DNA of 64,000 bases from Diplonema japonicum (Eukaryota; Protista; Euglenozoa: Diplonemea), in assembly GCA_964019335.1 (NCBI GenBank), contig OZ025650.1, forward strand, positions 248,001-312,000. The letters run 5' to 3'. This document shows, piece by piece, positions 1 through 5,968 of the stretch (position 1 is its first letter; every line of letters starts with the position of its first letter). The notes below the pieces were generated by a model. The model saw only the letters and a program-made list of their open reading frames with translations. It was not told the DNA's origin and searched no databases. Position numbers and translations under genes: made by a program.

Positions 1-656
1 GTGCTATTGCTGTAGACGGAATGATACGGTTGTTCCAAGACTTGCACGACAGGCTGCGGTGTCCCGTGTGACCCATTGCTGTGATTCGAGGTGAATGACC
101 TCTGTGCATCGAAGGACGTGTCGCCGCGTGTAGGCGAGATGGCACGGTGGTTGCGGATGGGAGGGGACGTGACCTTCATACCCGGAAGGCCACCACCAGG
201 AGATGAGAGTGGAATGGCCGCAGGGGGCAGGGGTGTGCTACGTGCCTGCCTTGCTTTGGCCAGAGCCTCTGAAGCCCTGCGAAGTGCGGCGCTCGGAGAT
301 TTAATAGGCTGCTCAACACTGGAGGGCACCGACTTCTGTCGCTGTGTAGGTGCACTGCCATAGAGGCTTCCCGTTGCTGTTGTCTGGGCCGAATGGACAT
401 GTGTGCTGTTCTGTACAGTGCTCGTAGCATGCTGTTGATGCAATGGATGGTTTTGCTGTCGCTGCTCGTCCTGAGGCGGTGTCTGGATGACGTGAGGGTA
501 CCTCCTCATATGTTCTTCATTTCTTTTGGCACGCTGCTGTTGTAGTTGCTCTTGTTGCTGCCTTAGTTTCTCTGCCTGTTCTGAAAGTGTATCTAAGTTC
601 AGCCGTCTGAATACACTATTGGCAATATTCTCCAAGGAGTCTAACTGTGAGGCCAT
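1..656 (-). CDS. Hypothetical Gln/Ser/Pro-rich protein, 5' part (runs off left edge)
   Basis: Manual translation from ATG at 656 (MASQLDSLENIANSVFRRLNLDTLSEQAEKLRQQQEQLQQQ...) stays open to position 1. Absent from the ORF track because there is no stop in the window. Same strand as all neighbours. Confidence 0.7.
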   Translation of the reverse strand, partial: MASQLDSLENIANSVFRRLNLDTLSEQAEKLRQQQEQLQQQRAKRNEEHMRRYPHVIQTPPQDEQRQQNHPLHQQHATSTVQNSTHVHSAQTTATGSLYGSAPTQRQKSVPSSVEQPIKSPSAALRRASEALAKARQARSTPLPPAAIPLSSPGGGLPGMKVTSPPIRNHRAISPTRGDTSFDAQRSFTSNHSNGSHGTPQPVVQVLEQPYHSVYSNS

Positions 657-802
657 GACCCCATAGACCCTCCTGTAAGAGTGCGTGACAAGGTACAGTG
701 GCAATTTAAAAAAATAGTCAACAAGAAGGTGCCATTGAGCACCCTGAGCTAGGTACCGGGCGCGCCGTAAAAAAAAAAAGCAATGATCACTGATCGTCTC
801 TG

Positions 803-3800
803 TTAAGAGGAAGGCCACAGCGGGTGCACTTCGTGCTTGATGTTGGGTTCACACTTTCACACGTCTCGCAGACGATACCGTCCACTTTGTCCTTGATGGC
901 AGCAGCATCGGCGTAGAACTCCCCTGTGGGTCATTGTGAGTGGTTCACAGTAGCATACCTTTGCTGCGCTGGTCCCTGTCGATGACTGAATTCCTCTTGT
1001 TGAAGCGTGGCCTGTGGGAAATTGCGTCGAGACGCACCGTGACGTCTAGCTGGCGAAGAAACCTGTTCAACCCGCTTGACACAGGCTCTGGGCGGGAAGC
1101 ACTGCAAGCCACACCAGGCGTGCCTTCGAACACCACTACCCTATCCGCCATGAAGGATGTCATCATCAAGTCGTGCTCCACTACAACAACGATCTTCTTC
1201 ATGCGCACGGCAATTCTTCTTATGGCCTTCGCAGCCACCATTCTCTGCTCTGCGTCAAGAAACGCACTGGGCTCGTCAATCAGCAGCAGCGTAGCAGGAT
1301 TCCCCAGTGCCAAGGCAAGCGATACTCTCTGCATCTCCCCGCCTGACAGCTTGTCCGCGTCCAATATCATCAGGTCGTCGATCTTCAAGGGCAGCAGCAC
1401 CTCGTCACGCAAGATCGCACTCTTCCTCGCACTCTCAGGAAGCCCATCTTGAAGCACTTCCTTCACTGTTTTACCCGAAGGCATCCTAATAACCTGCGGC
1501 TTAAGGTGGCCGTGTTCTTTCAAAAACACATCGCCGCTGTCGGTATTTAAACTTCCAGACATGATCTCGAGTAAAGTGGTCTTTCCGCACCCGTTCTCGC
1601 CAAGCAAGGCAGTCACTTCGCAGGAGTTCAGTGTGCCATTTGTTACATCAAGCTTGAAGTCACCTCTGCACTTTGTCGATGAGGGGTAGGACCACTTGTC
1701 TTCGCCACCGAAGTCGTTCTCTTCGTGCATCTTGAAGACTAAGGGGTGTGAACGGAATCTCACGTTCTCCTGGTCGATGTACCCTTCAAGGAAGGCGTTG
1801 ATGCCGTCACGGACGTTCATTACTTTCGTCACGATACCGAAGGCACTAGGCTTTCCGTGGATCAGGGCGATGGTGTCCGCTAAGTAGTCACACACAGCAA
1901 GGTCGTGTTCCACGCACACGACGTACTTCATTCCTTGGAGCAAGTCCCTGATTACCTCGCACGCCCGCAGCCTCTGCTTCACATCAAGGTACGACGATGG
2001 CTCGTCGAACAGGTAGATTTCAGCTTCCTTAGCACACGCCGCCGCTATGGACACCCTTTGCAGCTCTCCGCCGCTGTTGTGTTTGCTTGAAAGTCTGCAA
2101 GTAGCACTACATACCTCAGCACCTTCACGGGGCGCTTCAAAAGATGCTGCAAACTGAGTTCTTTTACCAAGGTCTCTATCCTGTCGTCGTCCCCTGTGAA
2201 GGTCTCAAGGAATTGTTGCACTGTCTCTTCCACGTTGTCCTTCAATTTATCGATGTGTTGGACTTTGAATGAGCATCGTTGCTTCCCGGCTTCCAGTTTC
2301 ATGATTAGTGCCTGTAGCTCAGTTCCTTTGTACTTTGTTTTCAACGCTTGCCAAGACGGAACGTCCGTCCCGCTGTTGGGAACCAACTTCCCAGACAGGA
2401 TCTTCAAGGCAGTGCTCTTGCCCGATCCGTTCTCACCGATAATCCCCAGAAGCTTTTCCTGCTTCATCAACGGCAAATGGCACAGCGTGAACCCGTTCTT
2501 TCCGTATCTCATGACCACATGCTCTGTAAGCTCTTTTGGTATATTCACGATGATGATGGCATCGAAGGGGCACCCTTCGACGTGTTTTCCCTTCTGCCCA
2601 CGTTTCTTCATGCACATGTTGCATCCTGTGCACATGTCTTCATCGATCTTGCAAACCCCAGAATAGTTGATGGCCCCTACAGGACACACTTTGAAGCACT
2701 GTTTAGTGTTTAAAGAGACTAAAAAAAGGAATACCTCACGTGAGCATTTGTCGTTTCTGCACCTGTTTTCACGTACAACTGCAACTCTGTTTGTCGCCTT
2801 CGCCCCGACCGGGATATGGGATGGCCGTGCGACTACTTCCTGTTTGCCTCGTGTCCAAGTCTCAGGAAGGGTTTTGAACTCATCTTCGTCGATGCGGTGC
2901 GTGTTGATCTTTGACTCGCAGAGGGTCATCTTCTTTGTCCTCGTGAGCGCTTGTTTCAGCTCGTCCGCCGTGTCGAACTCCACAACAGCTTTTCCTGTTT
3001 TCCGGCCGTCCTTGATGAGCACTTGCACGTTGGAAGCGCCAAGCCTGTCGAACGCTAGACGCAGTGCGTGGTTGTTCACCTTGTCGCTCTTCTTGAGGTT
3101 CTCGACCATCATGATGTACCTCCCTGCCATGTTGTACACACGCATTTGCCTACCCGATGGACGGGGTCCGCTTCCTGCTGGTGGCGTCCAGACAACCGCA
3201 GGCTTCTGTTTCGGTTCACCTTTGGGCTTCCTCGGTCTGAAGGACTTGTCCCCATATTCCATTGGTTCATTCAACGTCATAACCTTTGCCTTCCTTGTCG
3301 TTCTTAGATCCCCGCACCCCTGACATTTCGTCCTGCTTGGGGGGTTCTCAAGTGTGCAGCGCTGGCACTTCCAAAGCTTTGGGGGTGCTGCCTTGCGCTT
3401 GCTATTACATGCCGAGCACTGATGCGTCCCTCCGACATTCTCCAGTGTGCAGTCGGAACAAGTCCATGACTTCTCCAGATGACAGTTGCTGCACTCCTGT
3501 GAGCTTAAATCGTTTTCAGTGTGGCATCTGGAACATTCCCAAGACTCGCATATAACAATCTCTGGCCTCATCCCGCACGAGGGGCAGCTGTCGGGCTTGG
3601 CTGGAAGGCCCACCGTACAGTGCGGGCAGAACCATTCGTCGACACTCTCGTCACGGACGGTATCACAGACAGCACACTTCATGACGGTGTCCATGTTGAT
3701 GTACGTGCAGCTGCTGCATGCCCAGCCATCGATCACAGGTTCCTCGTCTTCGTAGTCGGGTGTGGGCGAGGGTGCTGAAGGGGTATAGCTGGCTCGTGTT

Positions 3801-4513
3801 GATGTGGATTTTGGAGACGCATTTGTTTTCCGTTGTGGGCGACTGTTGTCGCAGGCAAGGCAAGTGTTGATGGAGTTGTCATTCAGTAGTGTGCACACAC
3901 CGCACTCCCAGCTGGTGCTGGGTGGTTCGTCGTTGGGGGGCGACACCCCCGACTCTGCCGCTGGCTTCGCTTCGCAGACTACGCAAGAGGTCAGGCTCAT
4001 ATCGTTGTCCAGGCTGCAGACTTTGCACGTCCAAACTGAGGGTGTGGGCTCGTCCTTATCTTGTGGTGCAGCAGGTGGCTTGGGTTCTCCGCAAACAACA
4101 CAGCTCTTGAAAGAGCATATATTATCAATGGTGCACTGAGGGCAGGTCCAGACAGCATTGCAAACCGTACTGCCGCATCCCGTGCAGCCCAAGAACTCGG
4201 TTGGCATCTCATCTTCAGACGGCTCCTTCTCCTCACAGGCGTCATCATCTTTATCGTTGTTGCTTTCTTTGTAGGTGCTGCTGTTGTTAGTATCCCAGCG
4301 CATCCAGCACGGACCGCAGTACCCGTCCACGATCTGTCGTTGATGAAAGCACTCCCCACATTCATGCACCCCCGTGAACCGCCCCTTATAAGTTTTGTAG
4401 AACTGTAAGCACACCACGCATAAGGTCACCTCGTCACGCTTGTAAATAGCAAGTATCTCCTCGCTCCCCGGGCGCTCTACCTTCGCCTCGCATATCCAGC
4501 AATATCGCACCAT
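803..4513 (-). CDS. ABCE1: Divergent ABCE1/RLI-family ATPase with N-terminal array of 8 RanBP2/NZF zinc fingers and an RRM; introns 924-958, 2074-2114, 2699-2734
   Basis: Splicing restores the FeS motif RCRNDKCSRE|CFKVCP...CTGCNMC...CPF and the signature L S|GGELQR. NBD1 GENGSGKS/YLFDE/VEH; NBD2 GENGCGKT/LSGGE/LLIDE/VEH; C-terminal HRPRFNK. Eight W-x-C-x2-C...C-x2-C fingers; RRM-like TGKAVVEF. Start taken as first in-frame ATG (MVRYCWIC). Confidence 0.9.
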
Positions 4514-4871
4514 GTCTCGGTGGCCCCCACCCCTCTCTTGACTCCTTTTCTTATTTTTTCTTTTGTTCTGCACCGAACAGCATGCACAAAATGAATGAAC
4601 GAACTGACCGATAATAAAGGGGTAAAAAAATCAATTGAAAATTCTTTCTGATCGAAGGGGCGTTGGAGGGAAAAAAAAGGGGGGGGTGGGAAGCGATATT
4701 TAAAGAGCAAGCCCAACTTCGGGAAAAAGGAGGGAAAAAAAAAGAAAAAAAAAGAAAAAGAAACACTGTTTCTTTCTCTCTCTCTCCAACCAAGCTGATT
4801 CTGATAACGTGGAAAGACCATGGGACGGCAAAAAAAGAGGGATCAAAGGGAATACATTTTTTTTAAAAGTG

Positions 4872-5968
4872 TCATTTCGTGAAATCAAGAAGAGTAAGCA
4901 TGTACGGTTCTCCAAAGTCGTAGTTAGTCTTATGCCTGAGCTTCATACCGGGAATAGAAGCAGGAAGGGGGTTAGACGGTTGGGAGAACTCGGTGGAAAC
5001 AGGGCTGGCAGGAATGGAGTGGTGGTCGGCAAATAGAGTGATAACGCATTTTTCAGGCTGGAAAACGTGGAGAACCCTCTGCACAAGCTCAGTGTAGTTT
5101 TTTCTGTGTAAAAAAAAAATTTTTTTTTTGGGTTTTCTTCAAAAACATACAATGGTAAATTGGTTTCGAAACTGACGTAGCTGCAGTGGTGCTCTGGGGT
5201 AATGTGTATCGTCCAGTAGTGATCACTGGTTCCTGTCAGTCCGTTCATGGAGTACCCGCATGGTTCGAAGATCTTCGCGTCTATAACGGAGCCAGGGATG
5301 ATGGTGTCGATTTCGCTGTCGGCGGTAACGCTTTCTGCGGTTTTCGTCCCGTCCTCGTTGAAGAAGTAGGCCATTCTCTCCTTGCTGAGCCCTGACATGA
5401 TAATCTCAAAGGTCTGGTCGGGGGGATTTTCCAACGCGTCCTCTGGCCGGGTGTAATCGGCGATGAAGAAGTTCCAATGTTCTTTGTTCAGCGGCCCAAG
5501 GACGTACCCCGAACCATTTTCGAAATACGTTTCAAGAAACGCGATTTCTTCATGGAAAGAACCGTGAGGCTTCGGTTGCCTCTCCGGCCACAGGAAATTT
5601 TTTCGGCTATACGACATGTACTCTGTCTCCAACCCTAGACACTCTGACAGCTCCGCATTCCATTCATTTTTTTCCTTCCCAACCAAGTCAAGAAGAGGCG
5701 GTATCATCTCCAACAAGGTTGTAATCCCACATGTCTTAATAACTAACCTCCGTCTGTACACGAACAGAGATGACTCTGACAGCACGTACATCTTGCACCC
5801 CTCCGACTGCTTTTTTCCAATTATCGTGCAGTGCGCCTTGTCCAACAACTTCTGCCACGTCTCATCGCTGATCATAAAAAGCCCCTCATCCACACCTACC
5901 TTGCGTCGGAAGTCGATTTCAAACTTCTTCTCAGGCCCTTCGAATCCCGGTCCGTCTATATCCGCCAT
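4872..5968 (-). CDS. AMD1: S-adenosylmethionine decarboxylase proenzyme; intron 5104-5150
   Basis: GFEGPEKK, YVLSESSLFV (autocleavage site), IKTCG, FEPCGYSMNG, TIHITPE, SYVSFETN. A 47-nt GT-AG intron restores ...NLPLKNYTELVQRVLHVFQP. Confidence 0.95.

Follow-up and report, generated by a model that had tools for sequence, protein, structure and literature searches.

A diplonemid ABCE1 paralogue that joins a RanBP2/NZF-type finger array and an RRM-fold domain to the ABCE ATPase core, with possible ubiquitin guidance to ribosomes

ABCE1 (Rli1 in yeast) is among the most conserved proteins of eukaryotes and archaea, and it is normally a stand-alone protein of about 600 residues. Ribosome ubiquitination has been linked to rescue by the GTPase Hbs1, which in plants has an Npl4-type finger, whereas the N termini of other Hbs1 proteins are UBA-like (Monem et al. 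2023, PMC9870110). On the strength of these Hbs1 N termini, a ubiquitin reader in the Pelota–Hbs1–ABCE1 pathway has precedent, but not on ABCE1 itself. By definition, an NZF finger of the ubiquitin-binding type has four Cys, a Trp and an Asn, carries Thr followed by Phe or Tyr and places a hydrophobic residue inside the second CxxC; tandem NZF arrays give avidity in TRABID and CAPN15 (PMC11372445). Here we describe a minus-strand gene in a 64,000-nucleotide stretch of the Diplonema japonicum genome (assembly GCA_964019335.1, contig OZ025650.1, positions 248,001 to 312,000; hereafter the window) that encodes a divergent ABCE1 paralogue with a finger array and an RRM-fold domain fused in front of the iron–sulfur (FeS) domain and the two nucleotide-binding domains (NBD1 and NBD2). 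The literature searched yielded no description of a finger–ABCE1 fusion. The best explanation, which we hold tentatively, is that this is an expressed diplonemid ABCE1 paralogue whose finger array may tether the ATPase to ubiquitin-marked ribosomes.

The gene occupies window positions 787–4544 and consists of four exons separated by three GT–AG introns of 36, 41 and 35 nt. Its spliced coding sequence comprises 1204 codons without internal stops, and the 1204-residue product contains, from the N to the C terminus, a Cys8 module, eight RanBP2/NZF fingers, the RRM, the FeS domain, NBD1, NBD2 and a C-terminal finger. An earlier note on this DNA had assigned the protein to one reading frame at 803–4513. 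The listing of open reading frames instead contains an 842-codon frame (2045..4573, minus strand), which runs from the Cys-rich N terminus through eight fingers, the RRM and the FeS domain into NBD1, and, in a different phase, a 369-codon frame (945..2054). The single frame thus gives way to four exons, with intron 1 in frame and intron 2 shifting the frame; the ATG at 4513 stands, and the stop codon lies at 787–789 rather than at 803. Exons were searched separately, and coordinates were joined only for codon numbering, length and stop count, and variant classes. The features of the gene are as follows, in window coordinates:

4545..4546, minus strand: AG acceptor for spliced-leader (SL) trans-splicing, from the transcript tail, with polypyrimidine tracts upstream at about 4600-4790
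4514..4544, minus strand: 5' untranslated region, 31-32 nt from the SL tail to the ATG
4511-4513, minus strand: start codon, the first ATG downstream of the SL acceptor
4289..4513, minus strand: Cys8 module, start codon included; four CxxC pairs (C5/C8, C32/C35, C52/C55, C66/C69), then W70
3302..4150, minus strand: eight-finger RanBP2/NZF-type array (regular-expression table and Pfam PF00641), with low-complexity linkers between fingers
4079-4150, 3962-4033, 3839-3910 and 3653-3724, minus strand: array fingers F1, F2, F3 and F4
3563-3634, 3470-3541, 3395-3466 and 3302-3373, minus strand: array fingers F5, F6, F7 and F8
2894..3118, minus strand: non-canonical RRM-fold domain (Pfam RRM_1), directly in front of the FeS domain
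2549..2791, minus strand: ABCE1-type FeS domain; spliced, C-x4-C-x3-C-x3-CP ... C-x2-C-x2-C-x13-CP
2699-2734, minus strand: intron 1, 36 nt, GT..AG, in frame and stop-free, inside the first FeS motif (CSRE|...|CFKVCP)
1773..2534, minus strand: NBD1 with its helix-loop-helix insert, from alignments
2411-2437, minus strand: NBD1 Walker A, GENGSGKST
2074-2114, minus strand: intron 2, 41 nt, GTATG...ACAG, frame-shifting, splitting the NBD1 signature motif
2001-2003 and 1905-1907, minus strand: NBD1 Walker B Glu (IYLFDEP) and H-loop His (CVEHDL); the signature is SGGELQR
959..1772, minus strand: hinge 1, NBD2 and hinge 2, the last holding RPRFNK
1575-1601, minus strand: NBD2 Walker A, GENGCGKTT; the signature is LSGGEMQR
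1272-1274 and 1173-1175, minus strand: NBD2 Walker B Glu (LLLIDEP) and H-loop His (VVEHDL)
924-958, minus strand: intron 3, 35 nt, GT..AG
787-923, minus strand: last exon, with the ABCE1 C-terminal GEFYADAA tail, the ninth finger and the stop codon TGA (787-789)
808-876, minus strand: ninth finger, IVCETCESVNPTSSTKCTRC, without Trp and with E-S after its second Cys

To define the transcript, contigs from four public runs (X8, X1, X2 and X6) were aligned to window positions 700–4700. One contig of run X8, whose organism label is the same as that of the DNA, covers 4545–2735, 2698–2115, 2073–958 and 922–700 and lacks all three introns, and the ends of its joints read CT..AC on the plus strand, that is, GT..AG on the gene strand. 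Beyond position 4545 this contig carries 22 unaligned letters, the reverse complement of which is GCTACAGTTTCTGTACTTTATT; this 22-mer has 217 copies in the 62.5-Mb genome and none in a reversed control, and we take it to be the 3' part of a euglenozoan, diplonemid-type SL. Because the contig carries the SL 22-mer at this position, we conclude that trans-splicing of the mRNA uses the AG at 4546-4545, although the terminal G of the SL would also allow a junction at 4545/4544. The joints in contigs of X1 and X2, which come from relatives 95–99% alike, are identical to those of X8, and the X6 contig, unspliced and near-identical, is probably source DNA. The X8 contig runs unbroken from the SL tail at 4545 through the fingers, RRM, FeS domain and NBDs to the stop codon. 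An SL addition site between the fingers and the FeS domain, which the earlier note had named as the result that would undo the fusion, is absent from the dominant form represented by these contigs, alongside which a minor isoform may still exist. The same contig (8308 nt) extends 4.5 kb past the 3' end of the gene into downstream sequence (window 1–700 and beyond), which points either to a precursor that is polycistronic or to a join made with the downstream gene in assembly. Since it also joins downstream sequence, its continuity alone is weak evidence for the fusion, and the argument is carried by the open frame and by orthologous transcripts.

Each of the three introns affects how the protein is read. 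Removal of intron 1 is seen in contigs of X8 and X1, and the 12 residues that it would encode are missing from all orthologues. Intron 2, removed in contigs of X8 and X2, splits the codon AG|C for the Ser of SGGELQR. Intron 3 is removed in contigs of X8, X1 and X2; reading through it yields a false C terminus (...SKGMLL*), whereas splicing yields ...DRDQRSKGEFYADAAAIKDKVDGIVCETCESVNPTSSTKCTRCGLPLNRDDQ*, which matches the C terminus of a Rhynchopus humris transcript protein (...RGEFYADAAEI...). Of the four finger-bearing public protein models, two (P0001 and P0002) retain the last intron as coding sequence and thus miss the final exon. Introns of 35-41 nt, one of them in frame and without stops, can mislead annotation based on open reading frames. 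Across this gene the introns share the consensus GTAT(G/T)...ACAG as well as their short lengths of just 35-41 nt.

The fusion gene is not the orthologue of the organism's single essential ABCE1. A six-frame search of the genome located a canonical ABCE1 gene at a second locus (contig 13, 302850-306596, minus strand), which has several larger ordinary introns and a Lys-rich C-terminal extension and, in its largest exon, shares 87% identity with Diplonema papillatum ABCE1. This locus is flanked by long poly-purine and poly-pyrimidine tracts. The exon-3 region of the fusion gene (part of NBD1, the hinges and NBD2) shares only 47–50% identity with any canonical ABCE1. The finding of the canonical gene, together with the separate clade that the paralogues form, bears out the earlier suggestion of a divergent second ABCE1.

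Relatives were sought among 5.8 billion proteins with word-seeded searches and among 1.84 billion representatives with a full HMMER scan. The architecture is shared by only a handful of proteins, namely P0001 (1131 residues), P0002 (1207 residues, with the cluster member P0004) and P0005 (1315 residues, with 11 fingers and a C-terminal finger). P0004 is a EukProt transcript protein of R. humris (1237 residues) with the full architecture, a spliced C terminus and the C-terminal finger. P0006, a transcript protein of Artemidia motanka (1416 residues), combines the RRM, FeS domain and NBDs with a different N terminus that is finger-less. Those of these proteins that carry organism names are all diplonemid, which, with the SL and the canonical ABCE1, points to a diplonemid source for the window. 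Finger-bearing orthologues from three other diplonemid sources, with 6–11 fingers each, are 62–71% identical to the D. japonicum protein over the exon-3 region. No comparable architecture was found outside diplonemids among the 1.84 billion representatives. The earlier statement that the architecture is not known elsewhere is therefore narrowed: it is conserved in other diplonemids, was found nowhere else and is, as far as our literature search goes, undescribed. These searches also agree with the picture of ABCE1 as almost always a stand-alone protein. Other long ABCE1 forms among the matches listed near the top contain inteins; P0029 (874 residues) and P0123 (938 residues), both archaeal-type ABCE1, have intein/homing-endonuclease insertions between the FeS domain and NBD1.

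In a tree of the full ABCE module, paralogues, canonical eukaryotic proteins and archaeal proteins split three ways, with support by the Shimodaira–Hasegawa-like approximate likelihood ratio test (SH-aLRT) of 99, 97 and 99, respectively. Long branches meet in this tree and the stem of the paralogue clade is long; because of these long branches, we do not date the duplication. A tree of exon 3 only (63 rows) is uninformative on the origin of the paralogue. The shared RRM–FeS junction offers independent support for placing Artemidia with the finger-bearing paralogues. Variants in close relatives comprise 25 synonymous and 15 non-synonymous changes, an excess of synonymous changes that fits purifying selection. 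Taken together, we are close to certain that a spliced, SL-capped, expressed and lineage-specific ABCE1 paralogue is real.

The ABCE core of the paralogue is complete, as the earlier note had claimed: all eight Cys ligands, both Walker B Glu residues and both H-loops are there. Pfam ABC_tran is found in both halves, and neither site has lost its Walker A, Q-loop, signature, Walker B Glu or H-loop His. Exon 3 is colinear with residues 221–593 of yeast Rli1 (E = 2.7e-110), and the FeS domain plus NBD1 match archaeal and eukaryotic ABCE1 structures at about 1e-38, again colinearly. The first FeS motif is canonical once the 36-nt intron is removed. Where the family motif reads CX4CX3CX3CP ... CX2CX2CX3CP, the second motif here is CX2CX2CX13CP, in which an insert adds 10 residues ahead of the final Cys-Pro; the hairpin is also shorter than in canonical domains. 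The insert is also found in P0001 and in the Rhynchopus proteins P0002 and P0004, and it is shorter in P0005; Pfam Fer4_RLI scores above its cut-off in P0004 and in P0006. The 30 nt that encode RGQKGKHVEG in the second FeS motif were considered as a fourth intron and rejected, as the insert is present in orthologue proteins, including a transcript-derived one, and the RNA contig keeps it. Conservation was assessed over 178 columns that are at least 90% conserved among 60 canonical eukaryotic and archaeal ABCE1 sequences, and 131 of these universal columns are unchanged in all four finger-bearing paralogues. Paralogue-specific changes are concentrated in the FeS domain; others include GGEMQR in NBD2 and SAFLD.

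The eight N-terminal fingers match Pfam Zn_ribbon_RanBP (PF00641) at 8e-17 and follow the pattern W-x-C-x2-C-x10-C-x2-C, in detail W-x-C-x2-C-x3-N-x6-C-x2-C. The residues after the second Cys of F1 to F8 are TI, SL, TL, TY, TV, HT, TL and TL in our regular-expression table, which recovers the same six fingers with Thr plus a hydrophobic residue that had been reported before. The earlier count of eight fingers holds for the N-terminal array but missed the ninth finger in the last exon, which is kept in P0004 and P0005. Four Cys, the Trp and the Asn are found together in seven of the eight array fingers, F5 having Leu in place of Asn, and the C-terminal finger has no Trp. Listing the pair after the second Cys with the residue in the second CxxC, F1 has T-I/Val, F3 and F7 T-L/Ala, F8 T-L/Gly, F5 T-V/Ser and F2 S-L/Val. 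F4 (WACSSCTYINMDTVMKCAVC), searched singly, matches the NZFs of TRABID (NZF1, the best match), HOIP, HOIL-1L, TAB2/3, RYBP/YAF2 and Npl4. Every finger-bearing orthologue has one or two strict fingers, with T-F or T-Y plus V or M in the second CxxC: CTFAN..CAMC and CTFEN..CRVC in P0001, CTYVN..CGVC and CTFAN..CEMC in P0004, and CTFLN..CAVC in P0005. P0001 has one further finger with T-M. Among the six fingers with Thr plus a hydrophobic residue, F4 alone has the strict T-(F/Y) signature and the other five have T-L, T-I or T-V; orthologues keep at least one strict finger. From these sequences it is plausible that part of the array reads ubiquitin, with the rest perhaps adding avidity. In an AlphaFold2 (AF2) model of P0001, the predicted local distance difference test score (pLDDT) is 78–92 for the fingers, about 87–95 for the RRM, above 90 for the ABCE core and below 50 for the linkers; folded beads on disordered linkers, as this model predicts, are the geometry of a flexible avidity tether.

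Two further modules accompany the array. The cysteines of the Cys8 module, which occupies the first 75 residues, are invariant or almost so among orthologues, and an AF2 model of the module has a pLDDT of 83. The module has no match in Pfam at E up to 10; Foldseek against the Protein Data Bank returned nothing better than E > 0.8, the best VIA-align score (Z = 3.5, to ePHD fingers) is below that tool's noise level, and the ESM Atlas yielded generic zinc ribbons only, which are uninformative. The RRM scores 24.2 bits against Pfam RRM_1 when the domain is scanned alone and 20.1 bits within the long exon, relative to a cut-off of 20.7, and in the AF2 model of P0001 this segment mixes strand and helix elements. 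Its ribonucleoprotein (RNP) motifs, read from the sequence, are MMVENL (RNP2) and TGKAVVEF (RNP1). In the RNP consensus, aromatic residues at RNP2 position 2 and at RNP1 positions 3 and 5 stack on RNA bases. Invariant alignment columns place the most conserved portion of the domain in helix 1 (KSDKVNNHALRLAFDR), not in the beta-sheet; a conserved helix without these aromatics is a pattern more typical of protein-binding RRMs. The RRM of the earlier note is therefore upheld by Pfam in the isolated scan, but as a non-canonical domain.

How might such a protein work? We propose that the twin-NBD/FeS module would still dock on the small ribosomal subunit at its factor-binding site and that ATP-driven closure would move the FeS domain, as in ABCE1. 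The flexible finger array would serve as a multivalent tether, in which F4 and the T-aliphatic fingers could recognize ubiquitin, by its Ile44 patch, where it marks ribosomes or proteins bound to them. The ATPase would thereby be concentrated on only some ribosomes, namely stalled, collided or damaged 80S particles or ubiquitinated 40S subunits, where the altered FeS domain and the RRM may replace or modify the usual dependence on eRF1/Pelota. The tethering step is what we favour, tentatively. That the protein is a ubiquitin-guided ribosome splitter is a reasonable but more speculative hypothesis, which we hold to be less likely than not, and the specific form in which one polypeptide reads ribosomal ubiquitin through its NZF array and dissociates or remodels ribosomes through its ABCE1 engine, independently of eRF1/Pelota, is possible but doubtful.

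A number of observations weigh against guidance by ubiquitin, and several of them lend weight to other explanations. The strict combination of T-(F/Y) with a hydrophobic residue in the second CxxC is found in F4 alone (T-Y, Val), F6 and F9 lack a T-hydrophobic pair and F5 lacks the structural Asn. The whole array best matches the arrays of RanBP2/Nup358 (E = 3.9e-14) and Nup153 (1.5e-8), and position 14 is aliphatic in five of the six T-x fingers, as it is in nucleoporin fingers. The fingers might accordingly read a non-ubiquitin ligand, such as Ran-GDP, a nucleoporin-like partner, another protein or structured RNA, in a protein that serves ribosome biogenesis or export, or 40S maturation or initiation. 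Such a role would be in keeping with that of yeast Rli1, which has been implicated in both ribosome biogenesis and nuclear export; moreover, this genome has RanBP2 fingers at about 30 loci, joined to many unrelated proteins, and finger acquisition in this lineage seems easy. Yet seven of the eight fingers have Thr or Ser at position 13, where those of RanBP2/Nup153 have Leu, F4 groups with ubiquitin-binding NZFs when searched singly, and the fingers lack the N-F/W..R pattern of the RNA-binding ZRANB2/FUS type. On balance, we consider a non-ubiquitin ligand unlikely. The Artemidia relative has the RRM–ABCE core and no fingers, so the core function of the family does not require them. The genome also contains two helicase loci with paired Sec63 domains (contig C59, 247332-251089, and contig C105, 61237-64872), which could be Brr2 and a Slh1/ASCC3-like helicase, the two not being told apart; with these loci present, it is not obvious what gap a new ubiquitin-guided splitter would fill. 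A role of the paralogue as substitute for a missing helicase of the ribosome quality control trigger (RQT) complex was considered and is not supported, given the two loci.

The ABCE core and the RRM also contribute points on this side. Of the 178 universal ABCE1 positions, 47 are changed; the strongest alterations fall in the FeS domain, the part in contact with eRF1/Pelota that drives splitting; and Tyr155 of the helix-loop-helix (yeast numbering) is Leu. The RNA-stacking aromatics of the RRM are missing, with Met, Lys and Val in their place, and orthologues are similarly non-aromatic; RNA binding by such a domain is not a given. The changed positions and the remodelled FeS domain, the long stem branch of the paralogue clade, the peak of RRM conservation at helix 1 instead of the beta-sheet and the RRM–FeS junction, oldest of the shared features and also found in the finger-less Artemidia protein, would all suit a neofunctionalized ATPase that does not split ribosomes. 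It would instead clamp or switch other RNPs or mRNA in an ATP-dependent manner, for example as a translational regulator, with specificity supplied by the RRM and Cys8 module and the fingers as accessories. The catalytic motifs, the RPRFNK hinge and the greater part of the helix-loop-helix, which touches the small subunit, are kept, however, and we know of no ABCE-family member that acts away from the ribosome; we judge this change of function improbable, though far from negligible. Far less probable still, and largely refuted, is an artefact of the gene model, in which adjacent finger–RRM and ABCE genes have been read as one or a duplicate is decaying. Euglenozoan genes are densely packed and polycistronically transcribed, and the 4.5-kb extension of the X8 contig shows that contigs can join neighbours. 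Against such a join, the 842-codon open frame spans the fingers into NBD1, the SL tail lies upstream of the first ATG with no break in the interior of the gene, and the fused form recurs in the transcript-derived Rhynchopus and Artemidia orthologues; against decay, the 1204 spliced codons are stop-free and synonymous changes are in excess.

The upstream neighbour of the gene (4943-5968, minus strand) encodes an S-adenosylmethionine decarboxylase proenzyme with the self-cleavage motif YVLSESSLFV, and the 3' end of its open reading frame appears to enter an intron. Copies of the SL 22-mer are dispersed over most contigs of the genome, often within a few kilobases of contig ends, and contig C24 carries a tandem array of them (7179, 17838, 28497 and 39080) with 10.66-kb spacing. 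This layout is unusual for SL RNA genes, or the copies may be SL-bearing retro-copies.

Diplonemids are abundant among marine heterotrophs and regulate gene expression mostly post-transcriptionally. In this setting, a conserved and expressed paralogue of ABCE1 is a testable candidate for the direct coupling of ubiquitin marks to ribosome dissociation. If the proposal is true, the protein would be a one-protein counterpart, evolved in diplonemids, of the reader-plus-motor pairs Hbs1–Pelota–ABCE1 and Cue3/Rqt4–Slh1. If the ubiquitin idea fails, the gene still makes clear that an ABCE engine can be put to new use by the addition of targeting modules. For mechanistic work, the paralogues also provide naturally occurring FeS-domain variants.

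Comparison with known systems places the paralogue between several of them. With canonical ABCE1, Rli1 and archaeal ABCE1 it shares the eight-Cys FeS domain, head-to-tail NBDs with their catalytic motifs, the helix-loop-helix and the RPR(I/F)NK hinge. Relative to canonical ABCE1, with the gene for which it coexists, it has about 570 extra N-terminal residues, a C-terminal finger and an FeS domain with a 10-residue insert and a shortened hairpin. Its fingers have the scaffold of the ubiquitin-binding NZFs (Npl4, TAB2/3, TRABID, HOIP, HOIL-1L and RYBP), and F4 has their T-Y pair with Val, whereas most of the others have T-L, T-I, T-V or S-L and two have no such pair; no NZF protein is otherwise known to carry an ABC ATPase. 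Tandem fingers of the same type on flexible linkers are likewise found in RanBP2/Nup358 and Nup153, nucleoporins whose fingers bind Ran-GDP; these have L-V at the ligand-binding positions, whereas the paralogue has Thr or Ser at position 13. As in the RQT/ASC-1 systems (Cue3/ASCC2 and Slh1/ASCC3) and the Hbs1 N termini, which have a UBA-like fold in yeast and animals, a ubiquitin reader is proposed here to bring in a ribosome-dissociating NTPase. There, reader and motor belong to different proteins, or it is the GTPase rather than ABCE1 that carries the reader, whereas in the diplonemid paralogue both would reside in one polypeptide.

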